A stretch of 64,000 nucleotides of DNA from Takakia lepidozioides (Eukaryota > Plantae > Bryophyta): contig CM060733.1 in assembly GCA_030704615.1 (NCBI GenBank), positions 4,712,001 through 4,776,000 on the forward strand, given 5' to 3'. This document shows, one piece after another, positions 9,113 through 60,120 of this stretch (its first letter is position 1; every line of letters starts with the position of its first letter). The notes beneath the pieces were generated by a model. The model was not told the origin of the DNA, did not search any database, and saw only the letters and a list, made by a program, of their open reading frames with translations. A program made the position numbers and the translations under genes.

Positions 9113-9189
9113 TACCTAAGTATGAAAACTCAGGTTGTTGTGAAAAAAAACAGTGATACCTTTACCCTAGTATTACAATGTACACATAT

Positions 9190-12250: not shown

Positions 12251-14984
12251 TCATTTGTCCGTAGTAAGGCGTGAGCATGAGAGAAGTCGTGAAGCCTAAG
12301 GGAGACCTACGAGCCTAAGTCCTACAAAGCTCACTACTACGATATTTTCAAACAAACTTTCACTTTTGTCGAGACAGAAAGGTTGAGACAAGAAGGTTGG
12401 GGTCTACTGATACGAGTTCAGTGCTAAGAGCTGTGGAGACAGGAAGGTAGGGGTCCAGTGCTAAGAGCTTTTCAAACAACATTCAAATTTTTTTTAGACA
12501 GGAAGATATATAAACATGGGAAGATACAACAACACAGGGAAACGTATCACAATGATATCACAACGCAGTACAGAAGCCCCTTCATCTTTGGTTGTGTCTG
12601 TTGTAGCAAACAATGACCTCGTAACAACTCCTGTTACACAGACAGAGCTGACGCTAACAAGAGGAGGGCGCGGAAGGAAGTTGATGTGCATGCGCACAAA
12701 AGCCCCAGACACTTCTTCAAGTAGACTCCCGATTCCATTCTTGCTTACTTACAACTCTCGGGACTCCTAGGAGACTCCTATGGGACTCCTAGTTTCAAGT
12801 ACATTTTGATTCTTTTTATTGCTTACGACTATGGGATTGTATGCAACGTCCTGGTCGTCCTACGGATGGGAAGAAAATAAAGTAAAGTTATCATAAAACG
12901 AACATGAAGATCTATTCAGATGCAGATAAACTTACAGTAACCTGATTATGTGTAGAAAACCCAGTCAAGTAAGGATTGGGAGTTTGAGAACGCGTACCTT
13001 CAATATGTTGTTTTATAATAGAGTGTTCTGCCGCAAAATCAGAGTGAATTATCAAAGGTGCTCCAAACTTAGAAACTGCATTATGATACCATTTGAAAAA
13101 GGTTTTTCTTTCTTGTTTCTTGCAACGATGATTGGATTTAACAGATTTTGAGCTAATATAGTTGATAATTTATTATTGATATATTCTCGATTAGTACATG
13201 TGTTTTCTTTATGATTCCAAACAATTATCGTATTATCTAAAATTGATCTTTTTGTTCTACTTCGGCCAATCCATATTCATTATTATTTTTTAACAACTTA
13301 AACTTATATCTATCACAGTTAATAATTGTACATGTAAAGGATGAGATTTTAGTTTTTAAAAACAAATATAAGATGGTAAAAAATATATCATTTGATATTT
13401 TATTTTAATGTTTTACATATTTATTACACACATTTAATGTATTTTCTTCAATATTTTGTGAATGATATTTTAGATATATATTTACTATTTGATACGGTGA
13501 TGTGATACAACTCGGATTTTTTTCATTTTCTTGAAATTTTATAGATAACTATTAAAATTTATTATTCCACATATTGAGCAACATTTCATTTTAGACACCA
13601 TTGTAGAAGTACATTTTTTCCAATAATACTATAATTTATTAGCATTATACCATGAATCAGAGTGTGGAAGGAATTGTCGTTTTTTTTTTGTCATACAACA
13701 TAACTTAGCAAATATTCGACGTTCATGAATACATCAACTCATATCAATAGTTAGATAATACAGTATCCAACTTCACTTTCAACAAATATAGTAATATATG
13801 AAAACTAAATAAATAAAAAATATATCATTAACATCATATAGTTTAAAGTTGGGTTCCAAGGATTCTCACCGAGTATTATGTGTTGATCTCCCTTCACGTC
13901 CAATATCACATTTGTTCACAGTTTTCACGATCGCGTGACGTGTGTCCTATTACTTTTGTGAAGTTGCACGGACTATCACCTTTTAAGTCCGATGTATCTT
14001 TCTTCACAAGGTCTTTAAATACAGTTCAACTTCATGGTGCAGGGTCACAAATAAATTCTACAACCACTCACTTGTAACTACACAGTGCTCTTAAACATGT
14101 ATCAATCGAGTTATATGTTTAAAGATCTATTACACAACATTCAGTCTCAATTTTATTTTCTAGACATCCAAAGATCATACATGTAACAATTTGATTCTAA
14201 GTATTTCACTTTATTTTTTCTCTCTGCCGTAATCACTTAAGAGAGTTTGATTATAAGCGACTTTGTCAAAAATTGAGGAAGATGTACGGAAATATTGGAA
14301 GAGACTGGAAAACTCTAAAAGATTGTGAAAGACTCTGAAAAACAGCAACAAATTGAAAGCAACAGGTGAAAAGACTATAGAAGTTCAGAGATAGAGATTG
14401 TGCGAGTTCATCGTGAAGTTAACATACATATATATACTCTTGAAGATAATAACATTAAATAAATACATACATCAAAATTTTAATTTGAAATATAATTAAT
14501 AATAATTGTAAATAATTATTAATCACACCAACCACATGTAACATTCATTACTACAAACTGACCAAATATATAGAAACTGACAAAATATATAGGTTGTCAT
14601 AATTTATTATAAATGAAACAAAATTTTATTACTGATAAGTATCAAAACGGTTGTTGGTTACATTAATGATGACACTCACCAACTCCATTATTTATAAAGA
14701 TTCATAATAATTATTTCTACCAACAAAATGTATTAATTTAAAAATATAACTAGTAGTAGTTATGAAGAGTTATAGAAGATATTAATTACATACCCATAAT
14801 GAATTTAAAGTAACAGACAAAATCTCAAGGCTTGCATATCACATGTAGCATCCGTTACAAAAACCTCATAGAATATATGGTTGTCAATAAAGAATTTTTT
14901 TATTTACAATAAATATCATCAATTGTTCATCGGACACGCTCAAATCTTTATTACAAATGAAGCTTTTAAAGATTCCTACAACTT

Positions 14985-15372
14985 TAAAGCCGTTCTAAAA
15001 AATCCATAGAGAGGAAAAAATGTAAAATGCTATTACATTCGCCTAAGGAGCCCTTAGAGCCGCTCTAATGATTCCTTAGAGCGGGAAAATAAAAATAAAA
15101 ATAATTATTTATATTCGCCGACTCGTTAGAGCCGCTCTAAGAAGTTTTTAGAGAGAAACAATAGATATATATAAAATGCTATTTACATTCGCCCGAAGGA
15201 CTCCTTAGAGCCGCTATAAGGACTCCTTAGAACGGGAAAATGGAAAAATGTAAAGTGCTATTTACATTCGTCCTAAGGACTTCTTAGAGCCGCTCTAAGG
15301 ACACCTTAGAACTGGAAAATGGAAAAATGTAAAATGCTATTTATATGCGCCCTAACGACTCCTTAGAGCCAC
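14985..15372. repeat. 79-bp tandem repeat (~5 units) built on nested palindromes
   Basis: TTTACATTCG-like anchor at 15182, 15261 and 15340. Consensus core CTAAGGACTCCTTAGAGCCGCTCTAAGGACTCCTTAG. Confidence 0.85.
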
Positions 15373-16189
15373 TCTTCAACATAAACCGCCTAGTAAAATC
15401 AAAGATGGTTTTTTGAAATTTATACCTTTTATTGATAATTTTGTGCTAGAAATACTTGCTAGTACAAAAGATCGTAACCAAGCCAATAGATTAGAAGATT
15501 GGTATATTTCTAGTCTGGATACATATAAAAACGATTACAATAGAGTTTCTGGTCATCCAACATTAAATTTATCCGTTAATTCCAGGGGATGGAGGGTGAG
15601 TTAGGCGAGTTTGGCCAAAAGAGAGGTTGAAGTGCAATAAATGTCAAAAGAGCAGGGGATTAAAATACAAGAAAAAAAAAAAGATAGGACCAAACTCAAA
15701 ATAGCACCAAAATGAGAGCAAAACGAGTTTCCTGCATTTGCTTTTTGGCTTTCCTCTAGGGGTACGTGGTGCGGCGTGGATACGCGCAAAGTGCCTAGGA
15801 GAGGTATAATGGGGATGTATCAGGGGACGGAAGGCATGGTCACGTAACGGATAACTTTATTATGTAAAAAAAATTGGTTTCTAAAATATAATAAAAAATA
15901 TTTGATATATTTTTACAACCAAGAAATCATCAAAATTCATTACACTCTTATTATGCCACTTGAATGTTACATCAATCTATAGTATATATGATATTCAAGC
16001 ATGATATCAATATAGTAAATGCAACTTAAATATTATAAATATTTAATTATTATAACAATTATATATAAAATATATTATAAATAGATATATAAAAATATCT
16101 TCATGTAGAGTGTGAAAGAATTTCCGTTCCGTCCGCCCTCCGTTCCATGCTCCTGCCAGGCCGTTTTGCAGGCCCGGAATTCACCACCA

Positions 16190-20825: not shown

Positions 20826-23472
20826 CTAAGGGCAAGCATACAATGGATCCAATTTCAGAAGGCACTTAGCCACACGTTCTGCTCGCCCCAGATCACCATG
20901 AATTCTGCATGCACCAAGCAAGGCCCCCCACACGGAGGCACCTGGTTCCACCGGCATTTTATTGATGAAGTCCTCTGCCTCATCCAACTGCCCTGCACGT
21001 CCAAGAAGGTCCACCATGCAGCCAAAATGCTCAGTTGTTGGAGTGAGGCCATGATCTTGACTCATGGAATTGAAGTAGTGACAGCCCTCACCCACTAGGC
21101 CTGTATGGCTACATGCAGAGAGCAAACATACAAAGGTGACACCATCCGGCTTGAAGCCTTCCTGGTGCATTTGTTGAAATAGTTTCAGGGCCTCCCGGCC
21201 ACACCCATGCTGACCATATCCTGCAATCATTGCACTCCATGAGACCACATTTCGTTCAGCCATACTATCAAACACTTGACGCGCGTCCTTCATCCTCCCA
21301 CATTTGGCATACAAATCAACAAGGGCCGTCTCCAGAATGATATTTGGGACAATTCCAGATTTCATAAAGTCTGCATGGACCTCTATGCCCTTTGCCAGGG
21401 CTGTCAGGCTGGCACACGTATTAAGAATGCAACTGAATGTGACATTGTCAGGCGTCACACCTTCCTGTATCATTTTCTCATACATCTCCAAAGCCTGCCT
21501 ACAACATCCATGCTGTGCATATCCTCCAATCATCACGTTCCATGACACCACATCTCGTTCAGCCATTTTGTCAAACACTTGTCGCGCATCCTTCAAGCTC
21601 CCACATTTGGCATACATGTCCACAAGGGTATTCTCCAAATTTACAGATGATGCAAGTCCAGCTTTCATAAAGTCAGCATGGACCTCTTTGCCTCTTTCCA
21701 GGTCTGCGAGGCTGGCACAGGCATTGAGAACAGAAATGAAGGTGACCTTGTTGGTTGCCACCCCTTCCTGTATCATTTGATCATAGATCTGCAATGCCTC
21801 CCTACCACAGCCATGTTGAGCATATCCAGCAATGATCGCACTCCATGAGACCACATCACGTTCAACCATATTGTCAAAGACTTGACGTGCATCCTTCATG
21901 CTCCCACATTTGGCATACATATCAACAAGCGTATTTTCTAAATTTAAGTACGATTCAAGTCCAGCTTTTATGATGTCGGCATGGAGCTCTTTGCCCTTTA
22001 CCAGGGCTGCCAGGCTAGCACATGCATTGAGAACACAAATGAATGTGACCTTGCTGGGCATCATGTCTTCCCGTCTCATCTGCTCATACATCTCCAAAGC
22101 TTCCCTACCAAACCCATGGTGAGCATATCCTGCAATCATCACGTTCCATGAAACCACATCTCGCCTAGACATACCGTGAAATACTTGAGAAGCATCCTTC
22201 ATTTTCTTGCATTTGGCATACATGCCAACAAGGGCAGTTTCCAGAATGATATCTGGCACAATTTCACCTTTGATGATGTCAGCATGAACCTCTTTGCCCT
22301 TTTCCAAGGCTTCCAGGCTGCCACATGCATTGAGAACAGAGATGAATGAGAACCTATTGGGCACCACCCCTTCCTTTTGCATTTTCTCATAAATCTTCAA
22401 AGCCTCCCTCCCACACCCATGCTTAGCATATCCTGCTATCATTGTATTCCAGGTAAAAATATCTCGTACACACATTTTGTCAAACACTTGGCGTGCATCC
22501 ACCAGACTCCCACACTTCGAATACATATTGACAAGCACGTTGAGAAGCAGGATGTCTGGCTTGACTTGACTAGAGATAATGTGGCTGTGCACCTGCTTCC
22601 CCTTTGTTAGGCTTTTCATGTGAATGCACTCCTGCAAGAGACAGACATAAGTATGGGAGTCTGCCTGAATGTCTTGTTGGAGAAAAATGTGCAGCGCCTG
22701 TTTCAGTCGTCCTGCCTTACATAGTTTCCTTACATACTCACAATTCCGTTTGATTCCATCTTGAAGCCAGTTGGATTGTCGGTAATACTCACATTTGTCC
22801 TCAGACCACGTTTGATCAGGCTCTGCCCTTAGATGTTCTATGTTCACTCCGTGACCTGTGTGCAAACAGCACTAGAGCCTAAATCCTTAGCAGCTCAAAA
22901 GAGTCTGAGTATTATTGAGAAATGATTGGATAGGGCTGTCCTAAAGTAAGCTCTCTCATGGGCCCTTGTGGTCCTGTGTGGCTGGTATAAAGTTTTCTCT
23001 CAACCACAATAAGACTGACATAGAATCACAGCAGTATGTGACATCTGTGTGGGATTGGGAGTTACAAAAGCACTGGAATCAACGAACTATCCATACCAGA
23101 CCTTACAACACTTCATTCCCGGATGATTTTCCTGGACAAAATGAATGCAATTTCCCATGGACTGAATCACTATGGAACCTGGATGGCTCCGACCACACTG
23201 TCTACAAACCCAAAAGAACACAAAGAGTAACATGTCTATAACATGTCTATACCTTTCTTCGCTTGCACTGGAGACTCAGGAGGCGTAGTCGTTGGAGCCC
23301 TCACTTGCATTGGTCTCGGACCCGCCATTGCCAAGCTGCATGCCCATTTCAGCCCCACAGTCTGGCCCTTTACTATGCTGCATGTCGTGAGGCCTCCTTC
23401 CCATTCCTTCAAAGAAAAAGGCAATGCATTGGGCAGGGAGAATGCCTGGAGAGCGCCAGAGCACGCTGCCAT
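20826..23472 (-). CDS. PLS-class pentatricopeptide repeat protein ending after E1; predicted exons 23472-23253 and 22855-20826, ~749 aa
   Basis: Uninterrupted P-L-S array plus E1 in the 679-codon ORF. An upstream ATG exon with transit-peptide-like sequence ends AAG|GTATAG (phase 1) and joins in frame at CACAG|GT. Frameshifted E2 and DYW-start remnants lie at 20625-20825. Confidence 0.8.
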
Positions 23473-24625
23473 CCCTACCTAGGTTTTTTCAGAACATATA
23501 ACACTGAGAGAGAGTCGCAACTCCGAGAGTCGTAATTCTCACGGACATTGCACATTGTTCCTTGCTTGGTCTTTTGTAGAAGATTCAAATCGCCTTCTTC
23601 TGCACCATTCCCTTTCTGTAAGAGAGAGACAAAGAGAGAATTATGGGACAAAATGGAAGAAAACATGAGAGGAAACAAAACCAGAGCCAAAAAACAAAAA
23701 CTATTGCTCGAGTGATTGTCCAAGGGTGAAGAGAGAGAGCCTAGAACTTGATTTCCAAAAATGTAACAGTTGTAGTTGTGCATGTGTGGATGGGTATGCG
23801 GTGTCTGCGGGACGGTAAGTTACCTATGCACACTTCTCTACTCTTCTTCTCTCACTACTTCGAGATCCGTGGGAGATTCTTGTGTCTATTCCGAAATGCC
23901 CAATCTGACGTCTCCAAGGATCAGAAAAGCTATTAGCATCAGATCTGCATGAGGCATTGAATCTTAGACAATACATTGAACAATAGTTGTGTGGAGGGTC
24001 TCTCTTTCTTGTTTCATGCTCCATAAGCTCTTTGCGGCTGGTATGAAGTATCATTACATGTCATCCCTTCGTTTTGGAAACTTTTGTCCACTGTTTCTGC
24101 TACAACCAATTCATCTGCAGGTAGCAAATCTTGTTTAGTAAGTATGATGTGTTGGATGGGTTGCTTTGGGAACATTGCTGGGACTTGCTCATAAATTGGT
24201 AAGAATTACAACATAATTGGCAGAGTTAAATGACCTGATCCTGTTTTGTGCTGTCCCATACTAACTGGCTTTGCAACTGCCATTGCACAATTTCATCTCT
24301 ACCTTATTTCCCACAATTGAGGGGAACACCCCTCTCCAGCTCATAGGAGTATAATAAGGTCCATGTGTGGACCTTTGTACTTTGTACCCCATTTTGCGCC
24401 TCTCCTACAGTTCTTCTGCTTTAAGGTTTCCTGTGGTTACAATGCAGTTATTGATGATCACACATTATTGTGATCACCATGCCCAGCTCAGAGTGGGAGC
24501 AGAACTGACTGTCGCATTGAAAGACAAACATGCTTCTTTCAACGTCAATCGTAGCAAAAAAGTAATGCCAATTTGACCTTTGGCCCTGGACTGAAGGGAT
24601 TCACTTTTAGTGCAAGTTGCTCAGT

Positions 24626-27077
24626 TCACCAGTAATCCCCACAAGAGCAAACCCCATCTTGGAAGTGGTGGAAAAAGCTGGCATCACGTACAACAATTGC
24701 TCGCTCAGCAATCTTCGAGATGAACTTGGTAGCGTGTGGCAGTCACCACACACTCGTAGATTCTTGACAACGTGTATAGGTGTCCTAGGGGGTGTCCTCA
24801 TGAGCCCAAAAGCAATGGCCAGCTTCTCACTGTGGTGCAAAGAGAAACTTCCTTTTGCTCCTCCTCCACATCATGCAATACAAAGCTTGTGTCGGGCACA
24901 TACCCAGCGACATCATCTGTCCAGACAATATTTCTAGCCCAGCATGGATTTCTTTGATTTGTGGATGCACCTTGTCTCCTACAAGGAATGTGTGTACCTT
25001 GTTGTCAAACTCTATCATCAAACATATGTCGCGCATCCTTTATGCTCCCACATTTGGCATACATGTTGACAAGGGTATTCTGCAGATTACATATGGTGCA
25101 ATTCCAGATCTGATAATGTCAGTATGAACTTCTTTGCCCTTCTCAAAGGCTGCAAGGCTGGCACATGTATTGAGAACCCCAATGAATGTGATCTCGTCAG
25201 GCATCAGCCCTTGCCTCAACATTTTCTCATATAGTTCTAATGCCTCCCTACCACACCCATGTTGAGCGTACCCTGCTAATATGGCGTTCCACCATATTGT
25301 CAAACACTCGACATGAATCCTTCATGCTCCCACACTTGGCATACATGTCCACAAGGGTATTCTCCAGAATTACATATGGTACAATTCCTGCTTTCAGGAT
25401 GTCTGTGTGTACCTCTTTGCCCTTCTCCAGTGCACCTATGCTGGCACATGCGTTGAGAACACTAATAAATGTGACCTGGTCGGGTTTCACTCCTTTCTGT
25501 ACCATATGCTCATACATCTCCAAAGCCTCCTTACCACTTCCATGTTGAACATATCCTGCAATCATCGCACTCCATGAGACCATATCTTGTTTGGACATGT
25601 TGGCAAACACTTGACGTGCATCCTCCATGCTCCCACATTTTGCATACATGTCCACCAGGGCAGTCTCCAAGTTCAAATATGACACAACTCCAGATTTCAT
25701 GATGTCAGCATGGACCTCTCTGCCCTTCTCAAGGGCTGCCAGGCTGGTACATGCATTGAGAACACATATGAATGTGACCTTGTTGGGTTTCACTCCTTCC
25801 TGTGTCATTTGCTCATACATATTCAAAGCCTCCCTACCACATCCGTGCTGAGCATATCTGGCAATCATTGCACTCCATGAGACCACATCTCGCTGAGCCA
25901 TATTGTCAAACACTCGATGCGCATCCATCATACTCCCGCATTTGGCATACAGGTCAACAAGGGTATTCTCCAAATGTATATATGATGCAATTTCCAATTT
26001 TAATTATGTCAGCATGGATCATTTGCCCTTTTCCAGGGCTGCCAGGCTGGCACACGCATGGAGTACACAAATGAACGTGACCTTGTTGGGCGTCACCCCT
26101 TCCCGTGTCATTTGCTCGTAGATATCCAAAGACTCCCTAGCAGACCCACACTGAGCATATCCTGCAATCATTGCATTCCATGAGACCACATCTTGTTGAG
26201 CCATATTGTTGAACTTGACACGCATCCTTCATGCTACCGCATTTGGCATACATGTCGACAAGGGCAGAATGACATCTTGCATAATTCCAGCTTTCATGAC
26301 ATCAGCGTGGACCTCTTTGCCCTTTTCCAGGACTGCCAGACTGGCACACACATTCAGCACCCAAAATGAATGTGACCCGGTTGGGCATAACCCCTTCCCG
26401 TTGCATTTTTTCATATATCTTCAAGGCCTCCATAGTGTACCCTTGCTTGCCATACCTTGCTATCATTATATTCCACGTAAACATATCCCGTTCAGGCATT
26501 TTGTCAAACACTTGCCATGCATCAGCCACACGCCCGCACTTGGCATACATATTTACAACCGTGTTGAGGAGAAAGATGTTTGGCTTGAATCCACTTTGGA
26601 TGATGTGGGCATACACCTGCTTTCCCTCTGCTAGACCTTTCATTTTGATGCACTCCTGCAAGGCACAGACATAAGTATTGGAGTCTGCCTGACTGCCTTG
26701 TTGGTTCAAAATGTGAAGTGCTTTACATAGAGTCCTTACATGCCCACAAGTGCCAGAGGACTTCTTGTTGATCCCTGGTGTTGGCATTTGCACATGATAC
26801 TCAAACTCACCCACCAGTGTTTGACAAGACTCTGTCCTTCGACCATAATCCCGAAACCCAATGGATTCTGCTGGACCTTGTGTTGTGACAGCTAGTTCTG
26901 CTTTAACCAAGGGGGGTTACACCAAGCCTCAGTCCAGAAGGCCTCCTTCGTGCACTTATGTCTGAAGTCTGATGATCTTAGACTTTTCTGTGGTTTCCAG
27001 TGGGCAGCTGAGAAGCCATACCTTCTTATACCATAGCCTTCCATAGACCACCCTCTACACACCAAAGCTCCAAGCAT
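24626..27077 (-). pseudogene. PLS-PPR-DYW pseudogene with internal deletion of the E domains
   Basis: PPR motifs across several frames (for example ORF 25248-25997). The PPR array is fused directly to IEFDNKVHTF near 25020. DYW ends [10 protein letters not shown] at 24626. Confidence 0.9.
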
Positions 27078-27974
27078 CTTCCAAATAGCAGGGCATAACC
27101 TTGAATAGAGATACCAGAAAACTGACAAGATAGTGAGCTTCATTTGGCGAGAATTATCGTCCATATCACCATTGGCAATCACAATGCAGTCCACAAAACA
27201 TAAGTATTCCAGCTTCAGTCCTCCTGGACAAACTGTTTCGCATCCTCAAAGAAGATCGCCTCACCTTATCAAATCTGTTGTCCCACCAGAGTAAAGGATG
27301 GGAGAAGAATTTCTCCCAGAGCAGTTCTATGCTCATTACTTGACCTGCATGCAAACAGCACTAAAACCTACATCTTTAGTAGCTCGGGGAATGCTTGTAT
27401 AGGCTTCCCATAATCTTTCCCAGCCCATTCCCAAGCACCGTGTGATGGGCAAAGAACTTATAGTCCACGAATCACATTCTGTGTTGGATTGGGACTAATG
27501 AAACAGCGCTGCAATCGACTGTGTTTTCTAGCATGATGTCTACCAGCCCTTGGATCACGACTCAATTTACCGTGACCGTTCTGACGTTGAATGCGGTCTG
27601 GGCTGAGTTTCCGTACCTTGGTGGATAGAAACCCCACTGATGACTTTGGAGGATGGATAACCCGCTGGGACTGTGTAGGAGTACGTGGGATCGCGCTGAA
27701 GAAAACTTTCTTTTGCCCTTATCCATCCCTTGGTGCGACTGGCAATTGTTCTGCATTGCTCCACACCAAAGAAATTTGTGTCACATCTGTGGTTTCGCAT
27801 TACCGTCCATGTGATGAACTCAACTAATTTGCTCAGACATATTGTGGGGATTTCCGTGGGTCATCTGCAAGTACTATTATCACCTAGTCTCACGGGTACT
27901 GCCAAAGAACAGGGTATCCTACAGGGGTAAGCCTTGTAAAACTCTCTCTCTCTCTCTCTCTCTCAATTGTGAAA

Positions 27975-28687
27975 TTATCAACAAGGGTTTGAAGTACGAG
28001 CATAGTATCTGGCTAAAACTGAATTTGAAGGGCGGCATGAGTACAAAGGACCTCTTTGTTGGTTGTGTTTACATGCCCACAGAGGGGACCCTTAGTGCTG
28101 ACGCAGACAAGGCCTTCGAAGATGTAAAGCTGGACTGTGCTTCGTTCCTTGCCGAAGGTCAGGTGGTACTATTGGGGGACTTCAATGCCCGGGTGGGCAA
28201 AGGGATCCATCAGGACGATATCATTGGACCTTTTGGTGAGGACGAGCTGAATTCTAATGGCAGACGTTTAATTAACTGTCTAGAAGAGCTTCAGCTTCTG
28301 ACCTTGAATAACAGGACAAGAGGTGACCAAGTGCAGTGGACTCGTGAGAAACCCCAAACGGGGGAACGTTCCATTGTGGACTATATCATAATGGACATAA
28401 TTTTGTTCCCCCAGTGTGCCAATGTGTTGATCGACAGAACTGATATTGGTACCTCTGACCACTTCCTGGTTTGGACTGAGATCAAAAGGTGTTTTCCCAC
28501 CACCAAGAGATCTGTGAAAAGTTCGATTCGGAAGTGGCGCATAGAAAAATTCCACAATGAGGAGGTCAAGGCTGAGTACGTCCAGGCCTTGCAAGAGGCT
28601 CTCCCTCATTTTGTCCAATCGCTCCAAGAACTTCAGTCACGCTCGGTTAACGCAAGAAATGAAGTCGAAAGAGCAGTGGACTCGTAG
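27975..28687 (+). mobile_element. LINE APE-endonuclease fragment (same family as 47193-49830)
   Basis: VLLGDFNARVG, SIVDYII and SDHFLV motifs. About 28458-28645 is near-identical to the reverse complement of 49645-49830. Preceded by a (CT)n tract. Confidence 0.9.
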
Positions 28688-42806: not shown

Positions 42807-45800
42807 CTAGAGCCCTACTAGTCCCCTCACAGCCTCAATTTCCTGTGCACGCTGTTGGCCTTCTACCAGGACTTTGTGAGGCACAAATTTTGTACTTTGT
42901 GATCTTGGTGTAGATAGGGTTGGTCTCCACAGTATCTCACTCCCTCTTGCGTTGCTTACTGGTATTACGCTCCTGGAAGTCAAAATGCCAACTGGAATGA
43001 TTATCTCTCTTCTTTCTGTGCTCTGTGGACATATCTGGCCTCTCACTCCCCTATGCAAAAGGCACGACGAATTTCAAAGGTAGCACCTGTGTAAGGTAGA
43101 CAGCTGCGCTAGCAATGCTTTCAATACTGGCTTTCAGTGAAAATGCACAGGCTGTGAGAGATCGTCGTTAGTCTCCACAGAAACGTAGCTATGGATATCC
43201 TCTTTGGGGGCAGAAGCTAAGCCCTCACTGATCACGAATGCAAACTGCCAACTCCAAGTTGCCTATAAGGTATCTCCAAACTACATATACCACTAGGAAC
43301 CAAGATACAACATCCACAGGGGCTGTAGGGACTAAATACAGTTTGAAAGAAAGAAATGAAATGGTACTTTAGAACGAAAGAAAATCCATGATCTTTATAC
43401 CATCTATGGCTGCCTCAAAGAGCTTATGGGACAAAGAAAAGAGAACAGAGAAGAAAAAAAAAAAAAATGTACTCATAAAACGTTGTTTGCCGTAGCCCTG
43501 TGGCCATAGACCAAGCACCCAGTTTGGGTGGAACAAAAGGGAGCATATACTGTAACTATCTTTGTGAGGGGCTCACTCGGGTAGTGTGACTTACCTTGAT
43601 AGAGACAATTACTTCGGGTTTGCTAGATATCCTCTAGAAAGCCCTTCACACAAGCATCAACTTGCTGTGAGTGAGGTACCCAACAATTAGACCCCTCAAC
43701 AGGGCCAGGACCTTAGGCTCAGCCTCAAGATTTTGAAAATTGGTGAGAGAATGTACTCATAAGACGTTGTTTGCCGTAGCCTTGTGGCCATTGACCCCGC
43801 GCCCACTTTGAGCGGAACCCAAAGGGAAAGAATCTACCTTTGTCAGGGGCTGATGCCAGTAGTAAGACTTACCTTGGAATAAACAATTGATCCGGATTTT
43901 CCAGATATCCTCTAGAAATGCTTTTACACAAGCATCAACCTGATGTGTGCGGTTAGCCCAATAACTAGGCTCTTTATGGTGATGGGTTTTGGATTGGCGG
44001 TTTTGGTTGTGGGTCCCAAGAAGGCATGGGCTTTTGGCTCAGCCTTGAGACTTTCAAAGTTGGTAAACAGAGAGTGACAAAGGATGGTTCTGTGGGTTGA
44101 TTTGTCCAAGAAAATGCATCAACAACAAGGTATTTCTTTACATACATTCACAATTCCCTTGATAGATTTGAAGAGAGTGTCTCTCTGGTGAGGGAACCCC
44201 GGACAATGAAGTAAATGAATATTGTTTTCAGGTTGCCCACACAACCGGCAAGTGCACTCTCCCTTTCCTCTCTGCTTGTGTTTGATGTTCAAAGGTGGGC
44301 TTCCCGCCCTGAGTTTAAGTTTCAGTCTAGTGCCGAGAGTGGGAGAGCGATCCATTTGGACAATGTCTCCACTCTAGTCCTTACATGTCCAAGAAGAAAA
44401 AAGCAACATGGTATCATCAGTGCTCCTCTCACTGTATTGGAGAGATGATTGCGTAAGACAAAGGTGCAAACAAAAAAATGGTTGGTTTACACACGTGTTG
44501 AGAGGAGGGAGCCTTGAATCTTGCCGTGCTCGGAGTTCAGCAGCAGAAGTGCGGTGCACTATCCCTCCTACAGACTTGGCTGTCTCCAGTAGTGCTAAAC
44601 TCGCCCTTTGCTCAGCAAGATTCTGCACATATCCAGCCAACACATAAACAAGGATAGAAACGAAGCAGTGCAAATTATTGAAAAGAAACCAAGGCTGCAG
44701 ACTTTCTAGACCATGTCTATAGGATACAACTCTTAGTTGGGTGACAGAACTCGTGAGCTCTACTATAAAGTAAAACTCCTTTGTCAGCTTCAGCTGGGTG
44801 GCAAACGGGGTAGCTTGCACAATTACCACTATTGTATAGTGTTATTCAGTGCATGCAACTTGAATGGCTAGATAGACAGAGCAGTTTTTCAATTCCTCCT
44901 ATAAGGTAAGGTTTTCTTTGAAGTCCCTTCTTTCCCCACTGCTCAAAATATTCCACCCCATCCCCACCCCACTCTTCTTGCTCTCAGCATAGTTTCCAAT
45001 CATGCTTGCCAATGGACTGCTGCAAGCATGGGAAGTTATAGATCAGTCAATTGCATCTACAGCTATCCTGCCCTCAACTTCGTGTCACAGTTGTAGCAAT
45101 TGCTATTGAGTTGGCCAGTTTATGCAAGGTAGCTTCCATAGGTCTAGTTATTGACTCTTAAGGTGTGGCTTTCTTGCACATTGGCTGCTATTGCATGCAA
45201 ACAGAAAAGAAAATAGTAGCAGCAATTCGTCACACTTCCTTTGTGTTTGACAGCAATAGAGGGAATCCTGGCCCTTTGACAGCTCAACTGTACCCACAAG
45301 AGGTGTCTTCATGACAGACTTGGATTGATCTCAAGGCCTTTAGAGCACACTCCGATTCATCATGATGATAAGTTGTCAGAGGTTACAATGGCTTGAGACC
45401 TAGCATCAAAAGTCTTCCATCCTTGCTACACAACAATCCCAAGCCATGATCTCCAGCGTGGAACTCAACTCACCTCACATGTATGAGTCGCTATGTCTGC
45501 GTGAGGAAGCGAATCCATTTGCTGGTCGTCATTAACCATGCACGTAACCAAATCACATCAACCAGTGTAAGAAAGGAAAGCGATAACTTTTAGCCTCTAT
45601 TCGAATCTTAAATTCACCTTGAGAGGGCGTGCTCTTTTGTCAAGAGATCACCTCCAATATTCTTGGGTGTAACCTCAACATAGACCTATTGAACTTAAGC
45701 CTGAGACTTCCTCCACAGTGGCCTTAGTGCCCTAATCATAAAAGCTACCCGTTGATAAGTCCTCTGGTAAAAGGAGGAAAATGCCAGCTGAAGTAGAAAC

Positions 45801-48800
45801 AAGTAGTTTAGGTGAATCATACAGAAGAATGCATACTTAGCCACACTTCAGCAATTTGAGTACCTGACATGCTGACGGCCTGGGAACAGTGTCTGCAGAA
45901 GCCAATGACACCCGATGCACAGGCACAGGAGGCATCACAGGTAATTTCTTCTTGGGAAGTGGAGGTGTTGGATAAAACTCATACTGCTGTTGGTGTTTCT
46001 TGCGGTCTTCGTTTTGCAGTCTGCCCAGTACTTCCAAATAACTGCAACCCCATTTCCAAGTCAACAATGGAAGCTCTGTTTTTACATTGTCTGGAGTGCT
46101 CTCATGAGGCCATCACTTGGAAGTTTTCTGTGACTATAATCTCAATTTTTCCTTTTGCGGGGAAAGTAAATATGTTACTGTGTATGTTCCCACTTAAAAA
46201 AAATACGTACTTGTATCTAAATGAACCCTTCGAAAATCCATTGCCATCCAAGGGCACTTGTGCGCCCCCAGTCTTTGGCACTGGCATACCTGTCAAGGGG
46301 CTGTACAGCTGCTGATTCTCTGACCTGCAAAAGGTGTTTCTTAGGCAAGTGTCCCTTACCATGGTCTACTTTAGAGGCAACCTAAAAATCGACATTTTAA
46401 TGTTTCCAAGTTCGTTGGAGAAGAAATGAAATCAAATGGTGCTTTACAACGTCCACGGAAAGCTCATAGAGCTTATGGGACGAAATGGAAGAAACATGAG
46501 GGAGGAAACAAAACCAGAGCCAAAAATAAAACTGTTGCTCCAGTGATTGTCTAAGGGTGAAGGCCTTGTGCAGGTAAGCTGCCAAGCATTTCTGATCCTC
46601 AAAGTGGAAGAAAGTAGTCCTCACAGTGGTACCTTCTAATGTCCGCGGGAAGCTCAAAGAGATTATGGGACAAGAGGAAGAAAGAAACAAGAGAGGGGTG
46701 ACAAACAGCCCAAAAGCAACTAAAGCTCAAGGGATTGTCTAAGAGTCAACTTAATGCAGATAAGCTGCCAGAATTCCTGTTCGTTGTAATGGAAGACCTC
46801 CATGAGAGATTCATCATCATAGAGATTATCCTAGTATCTCAGAGAAATGAAATGAAATGAAATGGTGCTTTATAACGTCCGCGGAAAGCTCATAGAGCTT
46901 ATGGGACAAAATGGAAGAAAACATGAGAGAGGAAACAAAACCAGAACCCAAGAATAAGAACTAATGTTCTAGTGATTGTCTAAGGGTGACGGCCTCGTGC
47001 AGGTAAGCTGCCAAGCATTTCTGATCCTCATAGTGGAAGACTTCAGTGAGAGATTGGGTTCCACTGAATAAAGAAAGAAACATTATAACACCCTGCTACA
47101 AAGTAAACCATCACCAAAGACTTCGTTACTGGGTACTGAAGTGCCTCAGACTAGAAGAGGAAGAAGAACAAGATTATAACACCGACAAGAGATTGTACTC
47201 ATAAGACGTTGTTTGCCGTAGCCTTGTGGCCATTGACCCCGCGCCCAGTTTGAGCGGGAACAAAAGGGACAGAACCTACCTCTGTCAGGGGCTGACGTTG
47301 GTAGTAAGACTTACCTCCATATATAGAATTAATCTGGGTTTTCCAGATATCCTCTAGAAATCCCTTCACACAAATGCTGTGTGTGATTTGCCCAAAAACT
47401 AGGCCTCAGGAGGGCCTGGGCTTTTGGCTCAGCCTCGAGACTTTCAAAGTTGGTAAACAGGGGTACAGGCACAATACCCTTAATAGATTTGAAGAGAGCG
47501 TCTCTTTGGTGAGAGAACCCCGGACAGTGTATCAGAAAATGAATACTGTCTTCAGATTGCCCACACAACGGGCAATTGCACTCTCCCTTTCCTCTCTGCT
47601 TCTGTTTGCTGTTCAAAGGTAGGCTTCCTGCCCTGAGTTTAAATTTCAGTCTAGTGCCGAGAGTGGGTAGACCCTTGAGGTCATCCAAGATGTCCTCCCT
47701 GTTGGAGTGTCAAGGTTATAGCCCTTGCACGGCACTTTGAGAACAGAATGGGACGGGTAGCTCAGTGGTAGAGCACCCCACCGGAATGGGGGAGGTCCTA
47801 GGTTCAATCCCTAGCCCGACCACACGCCAGTGGTTTTCCAACATGGTATCAGAGCCAAGGTTGGGGCGGTGGTCAGAATGGGTGGGCATTAGCTATAAGG
47901 GCTATGCCTTGAGGGGGAGTGTTGGAGTGTCAAGGTTATAGCCCTTGCACGGCACTTTGAGAACAGAATGGGATGGGTAGCTCAGTGGTAGAGCACCCCA
48001 CCGGAATGGGGGAGGTCCTAGGTTCAATCCCTAGCCCGACCACACGCCAGTGGTTTTCCAACACTCCCCCATGTCACAGACTGGAAACAAGTTCAGGGAA
48101 GTTTTCTGCCTAACTTCATTTTCATCAGACAATCTCATGGCAACAGACATGGCTGAGGACACTACAGCCTCTAAGTCAGATTTATCCAGCAGGGTCAAGA
48201 CTTGCGGATCCAGGTCCAGGTCCTTGAGGATCTCTTCTACTCTCTTCTGCCAGGACTTAGCCTGTTTGACAGGGCGGTCCTGTTTCCAAGATATAGAGTC
48301 GATTAACTTAGGATATCTGGTGTTGGGCATATGTTGCAGCTGACCCCACCATCTGACCTTGAATTCATCTCGTCGGGAGCTTAAGGACGGAATGCCAAAC
48401 TCACCCCGAACAGCCACATTGGCTGTTTTGGAGCATGCTGACATACACTCCTTAAGCACCCCCACTTGAATGGATTCTAGAGACTTAGCCTGGTTGGAGT
48501 TATCAACCCATATAGCAGATCCGTACTCCAAGGCAGGTCTAATAACGCGACAAAGCATGGTTTTCTTAACCTCAGAGTTGACCCCTCTGCAGTGGAAAAA
48601 TTTAGTGAGCCCCAGAGCTTTGCCCTTGCCAGTTTGAACAACTTTCCGGATATGTGCATCCCAATTACAATTGGAGGAGAACTCAACGCCCAGGTAAGTG
48701 TAGGAAGGGAGGACCGGGATCTCTTGACTACCCCACTGTCACTTGAGATCACTTCCTCCCTCTCCTCTGTCGTTGAATGCTACCACTGCACATTTGCTGA

Positions 48801-51800
48801 CATTAGCCTCTAGCCCCCAAAGATCAAAGTATCTCTTCGCGCAATCAATCAACTCCTGGAGATTGGTTGGAGTCTCCCCTATGCCTGCGAAGTCATCCGC
48901 AAACATAAGGGCCGGTATGGTGGTATCACCCACCCTTAACCCAAATCCCTCACTTTCCACATCCTCGAGGAGTTTATTGATGAAAACATTGAAGAGCAGA
49001 GGGGAGAGAGTACATCCTTGAGCTACACCTTGGTCTATGTCAAAGAAGTTGGACTTCTGTCCGTTAACAGTGACACAGCTTTTGGTGTGAGCATACAAGT
49101 TGTGGACAACTCTCCACATCTTTCCCTTGATCCCACAAGACCAGAGGCGGAACCATAGGCCATCTCTCCACACTGTGTCATAAGCCTTTTTGACATCCAG
49201 GAAAAAGACATAAGTGGGTTTCCCTTCTTTTTTCCTTCCCTGGATAATCTGGCTTAGCGTGAAGATATGATCCACACAGCCCCTGTTTCGCCGAAAGCCA
49301 GCTTGGCCTTCGTGGAAACAACCTCTAGACTCCAGATCAACCTCGAGACGGGTACTTATAACTCTGCAGAATGTCTTGCCAACAGCATTGAGGAGCGTGA
49401 TGCCACGGTAGTTCCCTGGTTCTTCTCTGTCACCCTTCTTGTATAGATTGACAATGACCCCCTGTCGCCAGCGAAAGGGGATCATTTCAGTCTTCCAGAT
49501 AAGGTTAAAGAGGAGAACTAGGGCCTCTATCATGGGATCGCCACCGTGCTTGATAAGCTCGTTGACAATACCATCAGGTCCACCAGCTTTATATCCATTT
49601 AAATGTTCAATTGCTTCCACAATCTCAGAAGAACTAATGGGAACAGAGCGTGACTGAAGTTCTTGGAGTGATTGGACAAAATGAGGGAGAGCCTCTTGCA
49701 AGGCCTGGACGTACTCAGCCTTGACCTCCTCATTGTGGAATTTTTCTATGCGCCACTTCCGAATCGAACGTTTCACAGATCTCTTGGTGGTGGGAAACAC
49801 CTTTTGATCTCAGTCCAAACCAGGAAGTGGACACCGACAAGAGAAATGAAATGAAATGAAATGAAATGAAATGGTGCTTTATAACGGAGAAAGAAAGAAA
49901 GAAAGAGACTATAGTGTGTCAGCAAGGGCCTTGAGGGTCCAAGGGACAGAATACAGCAAAGAACCATGAAAGTAAAGGGTGTGGAGGGGAGTAGTACCAT
50001 GACACGACGCTCTTTCCGTATCGAGCTAGTGGTTCAATGACTCCCACACCTTGCCCCAAGCATGAGGGCGACCCCCAAAAGCCCATATCAAATCCTAGTG
50101 GCCTTGGCACATCCAACTCCAACCTGGCCCATCCTCGAAAGAGAAACCTTTGTCAGCCTTGCTATCTTGGAAAACCTGTGGGATCTCTCCATTTGGAAAA
50201 GCAGAATATAAAACGTTTCGAGTGCTAGAAACCCCAAACTTCATTCTATGTGCTTGACGTTTCCATTCCAGAAATACTTTAAGTTTGTACCAAAGGGTGC
50301 ACAGATTCACTGTTTTGAATCTAAGACAGGCAGGTGAATTGTTCTGAGAGCCTTGCAGATTTACTGTGAAGAGATTTGGACACTAGTGCCAGACATTTTT
50401 TGAGAAGTGTCTAGACCCCTATCCAAATGGAGAGAGCTGGATTGTCCGATGGAATTCTACTAAAACACTGCCGCACGTGGAACCAACCAAGAGTGCTCTG
50501 GAATTATTACATTGTATTCTGAGGTGTGCCAGTACAGGACTTGTGGTCAATGCAATTAGTTCAGATGAAAAGAAATGGAGTCCCTAAAGGCTGTGTATTG
50601 ATCCCACCACGGGAATATAAAAGTGAAACCAAAGCAACTTGCATGACACATGGCAAATATCCATAATTTACAGGTGGGGAAAGGAGACATACCCATCACA
50701 ATGTTTGAGGGCCCTTGAGAAGTTTTCATACCTTCAACCCAACATACCAGCTAAAGTCAGGTTTCCTAGCAGCAATTTATCACCTTGGGACAACCTCCAA
50801 AAAGCAATGGGAATAACTCATTACTTGAAACGGCCTGAAGAATTTCTCCACAAAAGCACATCTGCTAGAATAATATAGGTTACAAATCTTCCACATATCC
50901 TTTCTCCACAGCCAAATCCTCCTCTGCTTTGGTTATTCACTTGTCCCAAAGTTTGCATGGCATCCGTCACCAACATTTGTAACTTCCAACCTTTTGGTTC
51001 AGCACTGAAATGAGAACTTGGGACTCAAGAATGCATTGGAAGATTCTTCAACGTGCCATTCAATGCTCCTTAATGCCTTTCTTTTCTTTTACATATTTGC
51101 TACACATAGCTACAGTTATGTATTCTCCATAAGTGCGTTTACATCAGGACGGGTGCAGTAGAATTTGTGGAGCCATTCATCACATTGGCCTGTTTGTGCA
51201 GAACATAATGGCCATGGTGTACAAGTGAGAGTTTTTGGGAGTATCATCAGTGCCATGGAAAAAATACTAAAGACATCTTAAGACCTCAGTAATCAGCAAT
51301 TATTACAGCAGGCTAATTGACAGCTTACTTGACACTCCCTAGATTGTCAGGGTCTGCAAATTTCAGAAGTTTTTTGAATTCACCATCATCACAATAAAAT
51401 CCAAATTGTTCCAAACTGTAGCGGAAGGCATCGTAGGTCACCTGCCAGTCATCATACATATTGTCCATTGAGCTGATAACTCATACATGCTGCTGACTAG
51501 CAAAATGTCGAGGAGAGAGGGGGCATCAAATAAGTGTAAAAAGCAAGGCTCGTGTCTACAGTAGAAGATAGGAATTTATTTCCTATCTTTCTCTCTATGA
51601 GACAAGGCTATGGTACACCTGGATAACCTCGACTGTTTTGGTTGGACAGTGCTAACACATTCTTGTCGAAAACCATTTGAATATGAGCCTTCCGTTAAAT
51701 TAAATTGCTCGGGAGGTGTAAAAGAGGTCATCCTGAGAGCTCTTCCAATGTGGCCCTTGTCAATTAAACTCTACAATAGCGCTGTTTCTGACATTCGGCT

Positions 51801-57719: not shown

Positions 57720-60120
57720 TGGAAACAATCTCAGGGGATCATTACGCTTCTTTACAAAAAGGGTGATCGAACAAACATCACCAACTACCGCTCCTCAACG
57801 TGACATACAAGATCACTGCCAAAGCCCTCTCCCTTAGGCTCCAGCCTCTATTCCCTGCCATCATCAGGCCAAATCAGACAGGTTTCATTAGAGGAAGGTA
57901 CATTATGGATAATCTTCTTCTGGCTCAAGAAATACCCCACTTCGCAACCCACTCGGACCAGGCCATAGCCCTGCTCCTTCTGGACTTCGAGAAAGCCTTT
58001 GACCGGGTCGAATGGTCCTTCCTTATTGGGGCTTTGACCAAAGTGGGTATCCCACAGTCATTCTATCAATGGGTCAAAATTCTTCTCCTAAACTCCAGTA
58101 GTAGAGTCATCATTAACGGCCGCCTCTCCCCCTCCTTCCCTCTCTATCGTTCGGTGAGACAGGGTTGCCCGCTAGCACCCTTCCTTTTCCTTTTCGTGGC
58201 GGACTCTCTAGGGTATATGTTACAAGCCAATCAGGATATCATAGGCCTTAGAATCTCCAACTATAATACCCAGCTACCTACGCAAATCAAAGACTTTATG
58301 TTTGTCGATGACACCTTCCTCATGCTCCAAGCCAACCCTTCAAACCTAGATATTGCTTCCTCTATACTGCAAACATTTTGTCTAGCCTCTGGTTTCAAAG
58401 TCAATTGGGCCAAAACATGCGCCATCCTAGTTGGAGACCTCTCTAAATCCCAGATAGGTACCAGCCCCTCTTGGGGCTCACAACTAGGCCTATATTCCTG
58501 GCTGCAACCAGGCCAGTCCACCACTTACTTGGGGTACACATTCGGTAATATAGATCTGTCCGATGAACAACATTTTGCTCCAACCCTTGCTAAGCTCAAA
58601 AGGAAGTTAACTTTTTGGGGCTCCAAGCATCTCTCCATCACAGGGAGGGCATTGGTAGTTAACCAAATTCTCTCGGCAGACATATGGTACTTCTCCTCCC
58701 CTTGGCGCCCTAACCCCACCCAAATCAAACAGGTCAGAGCCCTCCTCAGGAACTTCATTTGGGGAGCCCAATCTACTACCCAAGGCAGGATAAGACCACA
58801 AGTTTCTTGGAAACAAATTTGCCTCCCCAAAAAACTCGGGGGCTTGGGAGTCATTGACCCTGATACAGAGATTACGGCTTTACTAGGAAAATGGGTTCCA
58901 AGATTCTTTGGGCCTGAAGGAGGTTGGTGGAAATTCCTAGTGGCAGGGAACATCCTAGCCACCTCCCCCCTCCCCAACACTGCGTGGAAACCATCTCTCA
59001 GATGGGTGGTGCAAGGCTTTAAACACAAGCTTGTGGGATCACCTCTCTGGACCACTATCTGGCAGGCTTGGGCCAAGCTCAGGCCTTTCCTCAAGAAAGA
59101 AGATGCTCAATCATATGAGGAGACCATCCGTCAACAACAACAAAAACCTAGCCCCTCAACGAAGACAAGCTAAAAGTTGGTCCTTCTGGGACCACGCAGG
59201 CCTCTCCCAATTCAAAGACATTTGGAGCAACCATGCATTCTTGGAAACTGCATCTATATCCCAAACCATAGGTGGGAATAGGGCCTTTGCTGGGTATTCC
59301 TTGGTAAAGGCCTCTATCCCTGCCACCTGGTTATCAACCCTACAACCAGGGCCTTCTACTCCAAATTTCCACTTCTGGACTCTCGGCATTCAGAATCTCC
59401 ATAGCAAACTGACCATCTTTTTTATTCTCCAGAGAAACACTACCTCCCTCTCTTCCCTTTCACATCGACCAGGTTACAATGTTCCTGTCGCTCACTAGCT
59501 ACCAACCCTGTCAATTCCCCATTTTTCCACACACCCCTATTAGGATATGCTGTTGGTCCTCACCAACAAAAGAGATGAACCCTCAACCTGACCCTACGCT
59601 GCCCATCAACACCTGGCTGGCTAGCAACTCCTTCATTTGGATCCTAGGCAGGCCACTAGCGGAGCTACAATTCGACCCCAAAGAATGGGCTTGGTCTTTC
59701 TCTCGGTCCCCAGTTCCCTTCTTCTATATACCACTAAGAAAGCCTACAAATCCCTGGCCAACCACCTTCCCCTTAACACCAAATGGAAAGTTAAATGGCA
59801 ATCCTATGGTTTCAACAATGAAAATTGGCAAGCCATCTGGAGAAATATATGGAGCAAGAATAGACCAGCTAAGATCTCAGCATTCCTCTGGCAGATCGCT
59901 AACCGAGCTCTAAAAGTAGGGGAATGGCTTCAATTCCTGGAGGCTTTACTCTGCTCTTGCTGCCATGCTGGCATTTTAGAGACCTTGGAGCATTGCCTGC
60001 CACGCCCCAACAATGATCTGGCCAGTCGTTAAGGCTTTTTATAGAGACTGGGATCCTCAGCCATGGCCGATTCTAAGCCTGCTTGAGACCATAAAGAATT
60101 CCATTGCTTGCCACCCGCCG
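57720..60120 (+). mobile_element. L1-clade LINE ORF2 fragment (RT + zf-RVT), frameshifted
   Basis: QTGFIRGR, LLDFEKAFDRV, VRQGCPLAP, MFVDD, YLG, GGLG, KISAFLW and C..C...ETLEH. Confidence 0.92.

Follow-up and report, generated by a model that had tools for sequence, protein, structure and literature searches.

The window, meaning the whole 64-kb stretch of Takakia lepidozioides DNA analysed here, contains at 47700-48063 a non-coding element of 364 bp that consists of two LTRs of 144 bp each and an interior of 76 bp (Table 1). It lies in antisense orientation within a dead LINE, whose reverse-transcriptase ORF spans 48739-49800 and whose broken ORFs continue past the insertion site down to 47329. 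Protein searches gave no close relative for the LINE reverse transcriptase, the best named matches being those of Ectocarpus at 50-57%. A PPR ORF is also encoded in the window, with matches at 50-54% identity that are best in the lycophyte Diphasiastrum, followed by Ginkgo, ferns, and mosses, and a protein atlas placed the host no more narrowly than in Streptophyta.

A preceding sequence-only reading had described a TRIM at this place, and its LTRs, target site duplication (TSD), primer binding site (PBS), polypurine tract (PPT), and A and B boxes were all found where it had put them. The PBS is complementary to the 3' end of the plant initiator tRNA-Met. The interior is too short for a protein and by eye contains no TTTT. 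The two LTRs are 99% identical, with the one mismatch being C at 47754 versus T at 47974 in a CpG context, which is the single CpG-to-TpG change that had been claimed, and the copy is a complete and recent insertion. Each LTR amounts in essence to a tRNA-gene-like unit, with 51 nt upstream of a 72-nt cloverleaf that contains the A and B boxes, followed by an 11-nt trailer, TTTT, and the terminal CCAACA; the upstream part (47700-47750) would be the U3 region, provided that transcription starts at the first nucleotide of the tRNA-like unit.

Table 1. Features of the 364-bp element and of the LINE that carries it (positions in the 64-kb window)
Feature	Position	Strand	Basis or remark
Dead non-LTR retrotransposon (LINE)	47329-49800	-	Pfam RVT_1, 1e-33; broken ORFs
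Left TSD, CTCCC	47695-47699	.	sequence; single CTCCC in empty-site contigs
5' LTR, 144 bp, TGTTGG...CCAACA	47700-47843	+	direct-repeat detection and sequence
LTR part upstream of the tRNA-like unit, 51 nt	47700-47750	+	position relative to the Rfam match
tRNA-like cloverleaf, 72 nt, in 5' LTR	47751-47822	+	Rfam tRNA, ARAGORN, minimum-energy fold
T4 run in 5' LTR	47834-47837	+	11 nt past the tRNA-like 3' end, 6 nt short of the LTR end
PBS, TGGTATCAGAGCC	47844-47856	+	only match in the 64-kb window (pattern search)
Interior, 76 bp, non-coding	47844-47919	+	sequence and repeat boundaries
Inverted repeat, left arm	47897-47911	+	ends directly at the PPT; repeat search, folds
PPT, AGGGGGAG (purine run)	47912-47919	+	abuts the 3' LTR; sequence
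3' LTR, 144 bp	47920-48063	+	repeat detection, ARAGORN, Rfam
Inverted repeat, right arm	47931-47946	+	starts 11 nt inside the 3' LTR; repeat search, folds
Second tRNA-like unit, in 3' LTR	47971-48042	+	Rfam tRNA, 54.4 bits; ARAGORN
Second T4 run, in 3' LTR	48054-48057	+	sequence
Right TSD, CTCCC	48064-48068	.	sequence; single CTCCC in empty sites

That the element has been inserted precisely into the LINE is proven by empty paralogous sites, as contigs of other LINE copies cross the position without interruption. Contigs related to this LINE number in the thousands in sequencing runs of the same organism, and 30, 5, and 4 contigs in such runs pass straight from the letters of 47699 to those of 48069, with only one CTCCC in the empty site. 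Inside the 64-kb window, a search for the rejoined flanks found no empty site, and the second LINE copy that could be aligned (44143-44343) diverges ahead of the insertion point and carries no information on it, so that the empty-site evidence comes entirely from the contigs of the same organism. If a tRNA pseudogene region had been duplicated locally in tandem, or if the assembly were at fault, a bare direct repeat spaced by 220 bp would be accounted for and nothing more. This explanation has a negligible probability and was rejected, as it is contradicted by the empty sites and by exact contigs that span LTR, PBS, interior, and the start of the next LTR in two runs from two other studies, and as PBS, PPT, TG...CA ends, and 5-bp TSD are all rightly placed.

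The claimed cloverleaf with consensus boxes and an odd anticodon loop is borne out by Rfam, ARAGORN, and folding alike. With a gathering score of 29 bits for the Rfam tRNA model, the proposed covariance-model check of 47751-47822 gave 56.6 bits (E 4e-11), and the unit in the 3' LTR reached its 54.4 bits with an E-value of 2e-10. The minimum-energy fold of the 5' copy is a cloverleaf; folding energy alone does not set the tRNA-like part apart (z -0.5 and -0.2), while the covariance-model score does. The A box of the 5' unit, TAGCTCAGTGG, is located at 47758-47768 and the B box, GGTTCAATCCC, at 47801-47811. The tRNA-like core occurs at only these two sites in the 64-kb window, with no occurrence expected from shuffled sequences. 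It is degenerate and cannot serve as a working tRNA, since ARAGORN reports both units as 'tRNA-???' without an isotype, the non-canonical anticodon loop CCGGAAT (47781-47787) has a C instead of U at position 33, the stems contain two mismatches (A3/A70 and A31/G39), and the anticodon GGA would require the long variable arm of a tRNA-Ser, which is absent from the Rfam alignment. Such elements inflate tRNA gene predictions, and masking them is advisable in plant tRNA annotation.

By the evidence of assembled contigs, the element has numerous family members in this organism, and a diverged form of the family occurs in at least one further organism. In assembled contigs from runs of the same organism, the LTR is covered by many distinct contigs, with subfamily variants at 47737 and 47749 and one divergent LTR contig that shows 19 differences over 141 nt. 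Contigs of the second organism contain joints of the interior end to the LTR start as well as a homologous U3, and the consensus of their tail retains CTTTTCACA immediately before TGG. The tRNA-like part is present in the family contigs of both organisms, in the second one at very high summed depth. Metagenome contigs scanned with a pattern of A box, B box, and PBS and with the LTR core gave no match, nor did viral contigs in one scan. Two of the findings that the sequence-only reading had named as speaking against it, a lack of other copies and a one-off SINE insertion, are not what the contigs show. An ordinary TRIM that received a single SINE or tRNA gene in one LTR, which was then copied to the other LTR, would be an oddity rather than a family feature. 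Such an event has been proposed as the origin of the Helenus and Cassandra lineages in general (PMC10886601) and may describe the distant past of the family; as an account of the present element it is very improbable and was rejected, being contradicted by the tRNA-like part in the contigs of both organisms and at the same place in a relative from Selaginella.

Elements of this kind have been published in 2024 as Helenus, and what is new here is a second plant host together with mechanistic detail. Helenus elements are TRIMs with tRNA-derived sequence inside their LTRs (Kojima 2024, PMC10886601). Their published sizes range from 311 to 1263 bp, the plant and fungal members have 5-bp TSDs, and a link to Copia has been drawn (PMC10886601). 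Their boxes follow the motifs TRGCY...YGG (A) and GGTTC (B), isotype and anticodon disagree in most families, and the only plant Helenus known in 2024 was Helenus-1_SMo of Selaginella moellendorffii (PMC10886601, DataS1). The Takakia element has two LTRs and a short non-coding interior within 364 bp, a PBS directly after the 5' LTR and a PPT directly before the 3' LTR, CTCCC as a 5-bp TSD on both sides, a non-functional tRNA-like part, and with TAGCTCAGTGG and GGTTCAATCCC also the published A and B box motifs. The name Helenus, which the sequence-only reading had put forward tentatively, was thus the right one, as the element agrees with the 2024 description in every testable respect and the Selaginella member is alike module by module. 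There is little doubt that the element ('TRIMp3') is a TRIM of the Helenus type mobilised by an LTR element, and it can be expected with nearly the same confidence that it is a complete, young, and non-autonomous member of this type, for which an autonomous element of the Ty1/copia type supplies the copying proteins.

The comparison with Helenus-1_SMo was done by eye and with short patterns at a limit of three mismatches, using the letters given in the supplement of that paper. By eye, all modules are common to both elements and stand in identical order. Both LTRs start with TGTT(A/G)GA and end in an identical 10-nt tail, TTTTCCAACA, the PBS TGGTATC(A/G)GAGC differs by one base, the PPT ends with GGGGGAG in both, with GGGGGGAG as the end in Helenus-1_SMo, and both have a 5-bp TSD. 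In the tRNA-like part, 55 of 72 positions are identical by eye, or 52 of 59 when the anticodon arm, most of which differs, is left aside; D arm and T loop agree completely. In both elements the anticodon loop is degenerate and lacks U33, and pair 31-39 is mismatched. Helenus-1_SMo, too, has an inverted repeat around PPT and LTR start, with other arm sequences. Apart from the hosts, a moss and S. moellendorffii, the two elements differ in total size (364 bp in Takakia versus 325 bp), in the LTR part upstream of the tRNA-like unit (51 versus 32 nt, not alignable by eye), in the trailer between tRNA-like unit and T4 (11 versus 6 nt), and in the interior (76 versus 85 nt), which shows little similarity beyond PBS region and PPT. 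Among the Selaginella-derived patterns, the one for the LTR-tail/PBS junction agreed in 21 of 24 positions and the one for the D-arm block in 23 of 24, each with no match expected by chance and with this element as the only hit in the window, while the 27-nt T-arm block (23 of 27) falls just past the mismatch limit. The pattern of the PPT/LTR-start junction did not match the plus-strand junction within three mismatches. A match of that pattern to the reverse complement of the 3' LTR end and TSD was taken as a coincidence.

It can be suggested only tentatively, and is rather doubtful, that the two elements form a single lineage, passed on vertically since before bryophytes and vascular plants parted. 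The common modules (tRNA arms, PBS, T4, integrase ends) are each functionally constrained, and two independent assemblies of them are conceivable. If there were one lineage, its age as an LTR parasite would amount to several hundred million years, and the paired cloverleaf with its compensatory changes, the weak T4 terminator, and the Copia PPT hairpin would all have been retained for that long, and propagation would need the tRNA fold itself, beyond the promoter boxes.

As to the autonomous partner, cis signals point to Copia, which is the likely donor of the proteins because of the 5-bp TSD, the initiator-Met PBS, and the inverted repeat around PPT and LTR start. In Ty1/copia elements, an inverted repeat has been described with its left arm at the PPT and its right arm beginning about 18 bp inside the LTR, so that PPT and LTR start come to lie in the loop (Bousios 2010, PMC2829016); the arms average 19-28 bp in Sireviruses and 'classic' Copia elements (PMC2829016). 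The Takakia element has the same layout, the same type of PBS, and the same TSD length, whereas it lacks gag and pol, its right arm starts only 11 nt inside the LTR, and its arms are shorter, comprising 14 bp with a small internal loop. Of these, 9 nt form a perfect repeat that was detected by the repeat search, and 5 bp were added by eye; the arms are paired in the minimum-energy as well as in the centroid fold of a putative 307-nt RNA. The 'Conserved Hairpin Site' of fungal GalEa Copia elements was considered as a match and rejected, being a different structure after the 5' LTR. No autonomous Copia element with the same PBS or termini was found in the 64-kb window.

The T4 run that follows the tRNA-like unit escaped the sequence-only reading. 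It is the single TTTT of the 5' LTR, and a transcript of RNA polymerase III would have to run past it. Exactly four T follow the tRNA-like part in the Takakia element, in Helenus-1_SMo, and in all 25 rust Helenus LTRs that were read. As a T4 is a minimal, incomplete Pol III terminator at which termination is partial (PMC5725217), the run fits as a candidate for a leaky terminator and for the border of R and U5. RNA polymerase III would start at about 47751 by means of the internal A and B boxes of the 5' LTR, and the majority of transcripts would end at the first T4 as short dead-end RNAs. A fraction would pass this site and end at the T4 of the 3' LTR. The resulting genomic RNA would measure about 305 nt and have an R of about 84-87 nt at both termini, together with a U5 of about 6 nt and a U3 of 51 nt. 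Only a minority of transcripts would in this case serve as template, since the T4 of the 5' LTR, at a distance of 11 nt from the tRNA-like unit, would end most Pol III transcription ahead of the PBS. The genomic RNA would then be packaged with Gag and Pol of Copia, with tRNA-iMet at the PBS and the PPT as primers, and its integration would duplicate 5 bp. A scan for promoters and terminators found nothing, the model behind it being bacterial and the host a eukaryote.

That Pol III makes the transposition template is the reading to which we incline, if only slightly beyond an even chance. An involvement of Pol II, with a promoter in the upstream LTR part or by read-through from neighbouring DNA, appears unlikely and yet deserves attention, as this polymerase would not be hindered by a T4 in the 5' LTR and as the use of Pol III by Helenus elements has had no experimental validation according to Kojima 2024 (PMC10886601). 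The cloverleaf would in that case have been retained for packaging into tRNA-packaging Copia particles, for export or stability, or as a TFIIIC chromatin boundary, and it agrees with this that its stems stay paired beyond the A and B boxes when compared with Helenus-1_SMo, with four pairs being changed on both sides (by eye: acceptor 5-68, anticodon 29-41 and 30-40, T stem 51-63). Against Pol II speak the exact T4 after the tRNA-like part, which is conserved in plant and fungal Helenus elements and has no obvious use for Pol II transcription, the upstream part, which has a mere 51 nt and shows no conservation when the moss element is set beside that of Selaginella, and Cassandra, the 5S analogue, which has been reported to be transcribed from its own Pol III promoter. 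The recent Takakia copy offers material for examining Pol III transcription as the template-making step of an LTR element, and the exact T4 together with the Copia-type PPT hairpin makes the Pol III model concrete and testable by mutation.

Among the known systems, SINE2 elements likewise begin with a tRNA-like part whose A and B boxes are presumed to drive Pol III, are non-coding, and are parasitic on an autonomous retroelement. SINEs are copied by LINEs, lack LTRs, PBS, and PPT, and have variable TSDs and an A-rich or LINE-like tail, whereas the element described here has LTRs, PBS, PPT, and a 5-bp TSD. The Helenus elements of the Pucciniales also have 5-bp TSDs and TGT...ACA ends. Their tRNA-like unit stands in the 3' half of the LTR, with exactly T4 and a short tail behind it, the PPT is bracketed by an inverted repeat, and a dependence on Copia has been inferred; their LTRs are mostly longer, and no sequence similarity to the Takakia element was seen beyond the generic tRNA boxes. 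Cassandra, likewise a plant TRIM that is non-autonomous, has an iMet-type PBS, a 5-bp TSD, and LTRs that carry the gene unit of a small RNA, complete with an internal promoter and a terminator for Pol III. Its unit is 5S rRNA-like, and the elements have 565-860 bp and have been reported from ferns to angiosperms, whereas the Takakia element has a tRNA-like unit and 364 bp, and the Rfam search, which gave no 5S rRNA match at E-values up to 1, matched tRNA. Of the two names that had been put forward for comparison, Helenus fits and Cassandra does not, and a young multi-copy family in a further non-seed plant, very distant from Selaginella, indicates that plants maintain TRIMs with tRNA promoters beside the 5S-based Cassandra.

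The element at 47700-48063 combines the replication signals of an LTR element, with cis signals of the Copia type, and a transcription unit that resembles a tRNA gene, around which they are arranged. Checks for repeats and motifs, together with Rfam and ARAGORN, found in their places all the features that the sequence-only reading had described for this miniature LTR retrotransposon (TRIM). The LTRs start with TGTTGG and finish with CCAACA, and the interior of 76 bp begins with the primer-binding site (PBS) TGGTATCAGAGCC, whose complement is the 3' end of the initiator tRNA-Met of plants and which occurs only this once within the 64-kb window, and ends with the polypurine tract (PPT) AGGGGGAG. 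Read on the minus strand, the end of the 3' LTR with the target site (48056-48073) resembles the junction of PPT and LTR start (GGGGGAG TGTTGGAA), because the target CTCCCCC is pyrimidine-rich; this is taken as a coincidence.

Features of the element and its surroundings (TSD, target-site duplication; T4, run of four T)
Feature	Position	Strand	Remarks
5' LTR	47700-47843		144 nt, direct repeat
3' LTR	47920-48063		144 nt, direct repeat
TSD CTCCC	47695-47699 and 48064-48068		flanks the element on both sides
T4	47834-47837 (5' LTR) and 48054-48057 (3' LTR)		11 nt past the tRNA-like unit, 6 nt short of the LTR end
LINE reverse-transcriptase ORF	48739-49800	minus	broken ORFs extend across the insertion site
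LINE, further loci	57800-59173 and 27842-28687	plus	
PPR ORFs	20826-26910	minus	one intact (679 aa), then two shorter (249 and 202 aa)

The element sits antisense within a dead LINE. When contigs of public runs of T. lepidozioides were compared with 47200-47919, 30, 5 and 4 contigs of other copies of this LINE were found to join 47699 directly to the letters of the window from 48069 onward. These are empty sites with CTCCC present once, so the insertion of the 364 bp was precise and duplicated 5 bp. An assembly artefact is ruled out by contigs in two runs, from two other studies, that are identical to it from the B box onward, through the end of the LTR, the PBS, the interior and the PPT, as far as into the following LTR. 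The LTRs are 99% identical, and as their sole difference in 144 nt (C47754 versus T47974) lies at a hypermutable CpG, the LTR pair indicates a recent insertion, as the sequence-only reading had concluded from the same difference; one differing site is too few for a useful date.

LINEs of the type that hosts the element are hugely repeated in the contigs of T. lepidozioides. The best named relatives of the LINE protein are from the brown alga Ectocarpus, with just 50-57% identity, and there is no close plant relative among the matches listed. Next to the LINE remnant, at 46418-47040, there are dispersed short direct repeats with lengths of 77 and 82 nt and identities of 62-92%. The G+C content is 32-38% at 1-16000 of the window versus 41-46% in the remainder. 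The best protein matches of the PPR ORFs are 50-54% identical, with the lycophyte Diphasiastrum first, followed by Ginkgo, ferns and mosses, and the shorter two of these ORFs are probably a decayed paralogue. The PPR genes mark the host as a land plant, and the low identities point to a non-seed plant that has no proteins in the database.

Each LTR carries a tRNA-like unit of 72 nt, for which the Rfam tRNA model (gathering score 29) gives 56.6 bits at 47751-47822 and 54.4 bits at 47971-48042. ARAGORN called both units tRNAs of unknown isotype, and the 5' copy has the cloverleaf as its minimum-energy fold. The in-register anticodon is GGA (serine). A function as tRNA is ruled out by C at position 33 in place of the universal U, by mismatches at the pairs 3-70 and 31-39, and by the lack of the long variable arm that serine would need.

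TRIMs with tRNA-derived sequence in their LTRs have been defined as Helenus, with hosts among the rusts, some further fungi, six animal phyla and one plant, Selaginella moellendorffii; the TSD of the plant and fungal members is 5 bp, and the fungal members seemingly depend on Copia (Kojima 2024, PMC10886601). The kind of element is already published. Every property of Helenus that can be tested on a sequence was found here, and the first assignment as a TRIM with a tRNA-like gene in its LTRs was correct. In the literature searched, no report of Helenus in mosses or Takakia was found. The element is a member of a family and not a one-off: many distinct contigs of T. lepidozioides cover the LTR, and in one of them 19 of 141 positions are different. 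Both LTRs of the element have T at 47737 and 47749, where C accounts for most of the contig depth when summed, which places the element in a minority subfamily. Contigs of a second organism have the same architecture, including joints that link the end of the interior with the start of the LTR; there the sequence ahead of the tRNA-like unit shows about 77% identity to the element (by eye), and the LTR tail is CTTTTCACA, followed by TGG. Five further organisms contain 16-24% of the sampled words. As a separate observation in the second organism, some contigs leave the tRNA-like part at 47817-47818 and go on with an A-rich tail where the LTR tail would follow, and the tRNA-like part has a summed depth far greater than that of the interior, with a low consensus agreement (0.5-0.6); this pattern may reflect a SINE-like relative of the tRNA unit in the LTR, or else numerous solo LTRs.

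Directly before the PPT lie 15 nt (47897-47911) whose reverse complement is found at 47931-47946, beginning 11 nt within the 3' LTR. The pairing comprises 9 and 5 bp on the two sides of a small internal loop, and the putative RNA shows the hairpin in its minimum-energy fold as well as in its centroid fold. The Selaginella member, Helenus-1_SMo, has a perfect pair of 11 bp in the same place, although with different letters. In the first part of DataS1 of Kojima 2024, at least 20 of the 22 Helenus families of rust fungi show the inverted repeat by eye, with the reverse complement of the PPT-side interior end located 10-25 nt into the LTR, and three pairs of sister families there have compensatory changes in the hairpin (for example LTR-1_PGr versus LTR-1_PSt, and Helenus-9_PSt versus Helenus-6_PTrit). 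The main text of that paper (PMC10886601) contains no match for 'hairpin', and 'stem' twice, on other topics. The same inverted repeat at the junction of PPT and 3' LTR has been described for Sireviruses and about half of the classic Ty1/copia elements (Bousios et al. 2010, PMC2829016). The repeat of the rust Helenus families equals this Copia repeat, and the hairpin is not new as a Copia feature. Taken with the 5-bp TSD and the initiator-Met PBS, it lends independent support to a Copia partner; no such partner is found in the 64-kb window.

Each LTR has only one TTTT, and none was seen in the interior. Helenus-1_SMo has the same layout, exactly four T follow shortly after the tRNA-like part in 25 of 25 rust-fungus LTR consensus sequences in the first part of DataS1, and the wasp families have six. 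Four T are the minimum for a Pol III terminator and cause a partial stop only, at least six being required for full termination in human cells (PMC5725217); Kojima 2024 mentions a terminator for Cassandra alone, not for Helenus (PMC10886601). Pol III would start at +1 of the tRNA-like unit in the 5' LTR, and the first T4 would end most transcripts, with a minority reading through and stopping at the T4 of the 3' LTR. Such a read-through RNA would be about 305 nt long, with 84-87 nt of R at either end, about 6 nt of U5 and 51 nt of U3, and Copia proteins would reverse-transcribe it in trans; the weak terminator would do what the ignored 5' poly(A) signal does in retroviruses. Under the main rival explanation, which may still apply, Pol II would transcribe the element and the cloverleaf would act in packaging, in stability or as a boundary. 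The use of Pol III by Helenus has been published as a proposal only, under the name 'TRIMp3', without experimental validation (PMC10886601).

The comparison of the element with the consensus of Helenus-1_SMo, taken from the supplement of PMC10886601, was confined to short patterns and inspection by eye. The order of modules is common to both, as are the LTR start TGTT(A/G)GA, the last ten LTR bases TTTTCCAACA, the PPT end GGGGGAG and a degenerate anticodon loop, and the PBS differs at one base. The tRNA-like parts, 72 nt in both, are identical at 55 of 72 positions, or 52 of 59 without the anticodon arm; upstream of them and in most of the interior there is no alignment. Within the window, the Selaginella patterns for the LTR-tail/PBS junction (21/24) and the D-arm block (23/24) match the element only, with no chance matches; the T-arm block agrees at 23 of 27 positions, slightly beyond the limit of the pattern search. 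Four stem pairs, namely 5-68 in the acceptor stem, 29-41 and 30-40 in the anticodon stem and 51-63 in the T stem, are changed on both sides and still paired. Common descent is the probable explanation of these likenesses, but the two could have been put together twice from the same building blocks, as every common module is under functional constraint. Different source tRNA genes could also be part of the cause of the compensatory pairs. The element adds a second, distant plant host for Helenus and a probable deep link to the Helenus of Selaginella, and the two sequence regularities, the PPT hairpin and the T4, make the model of Pol III transcription with Copia help testable.
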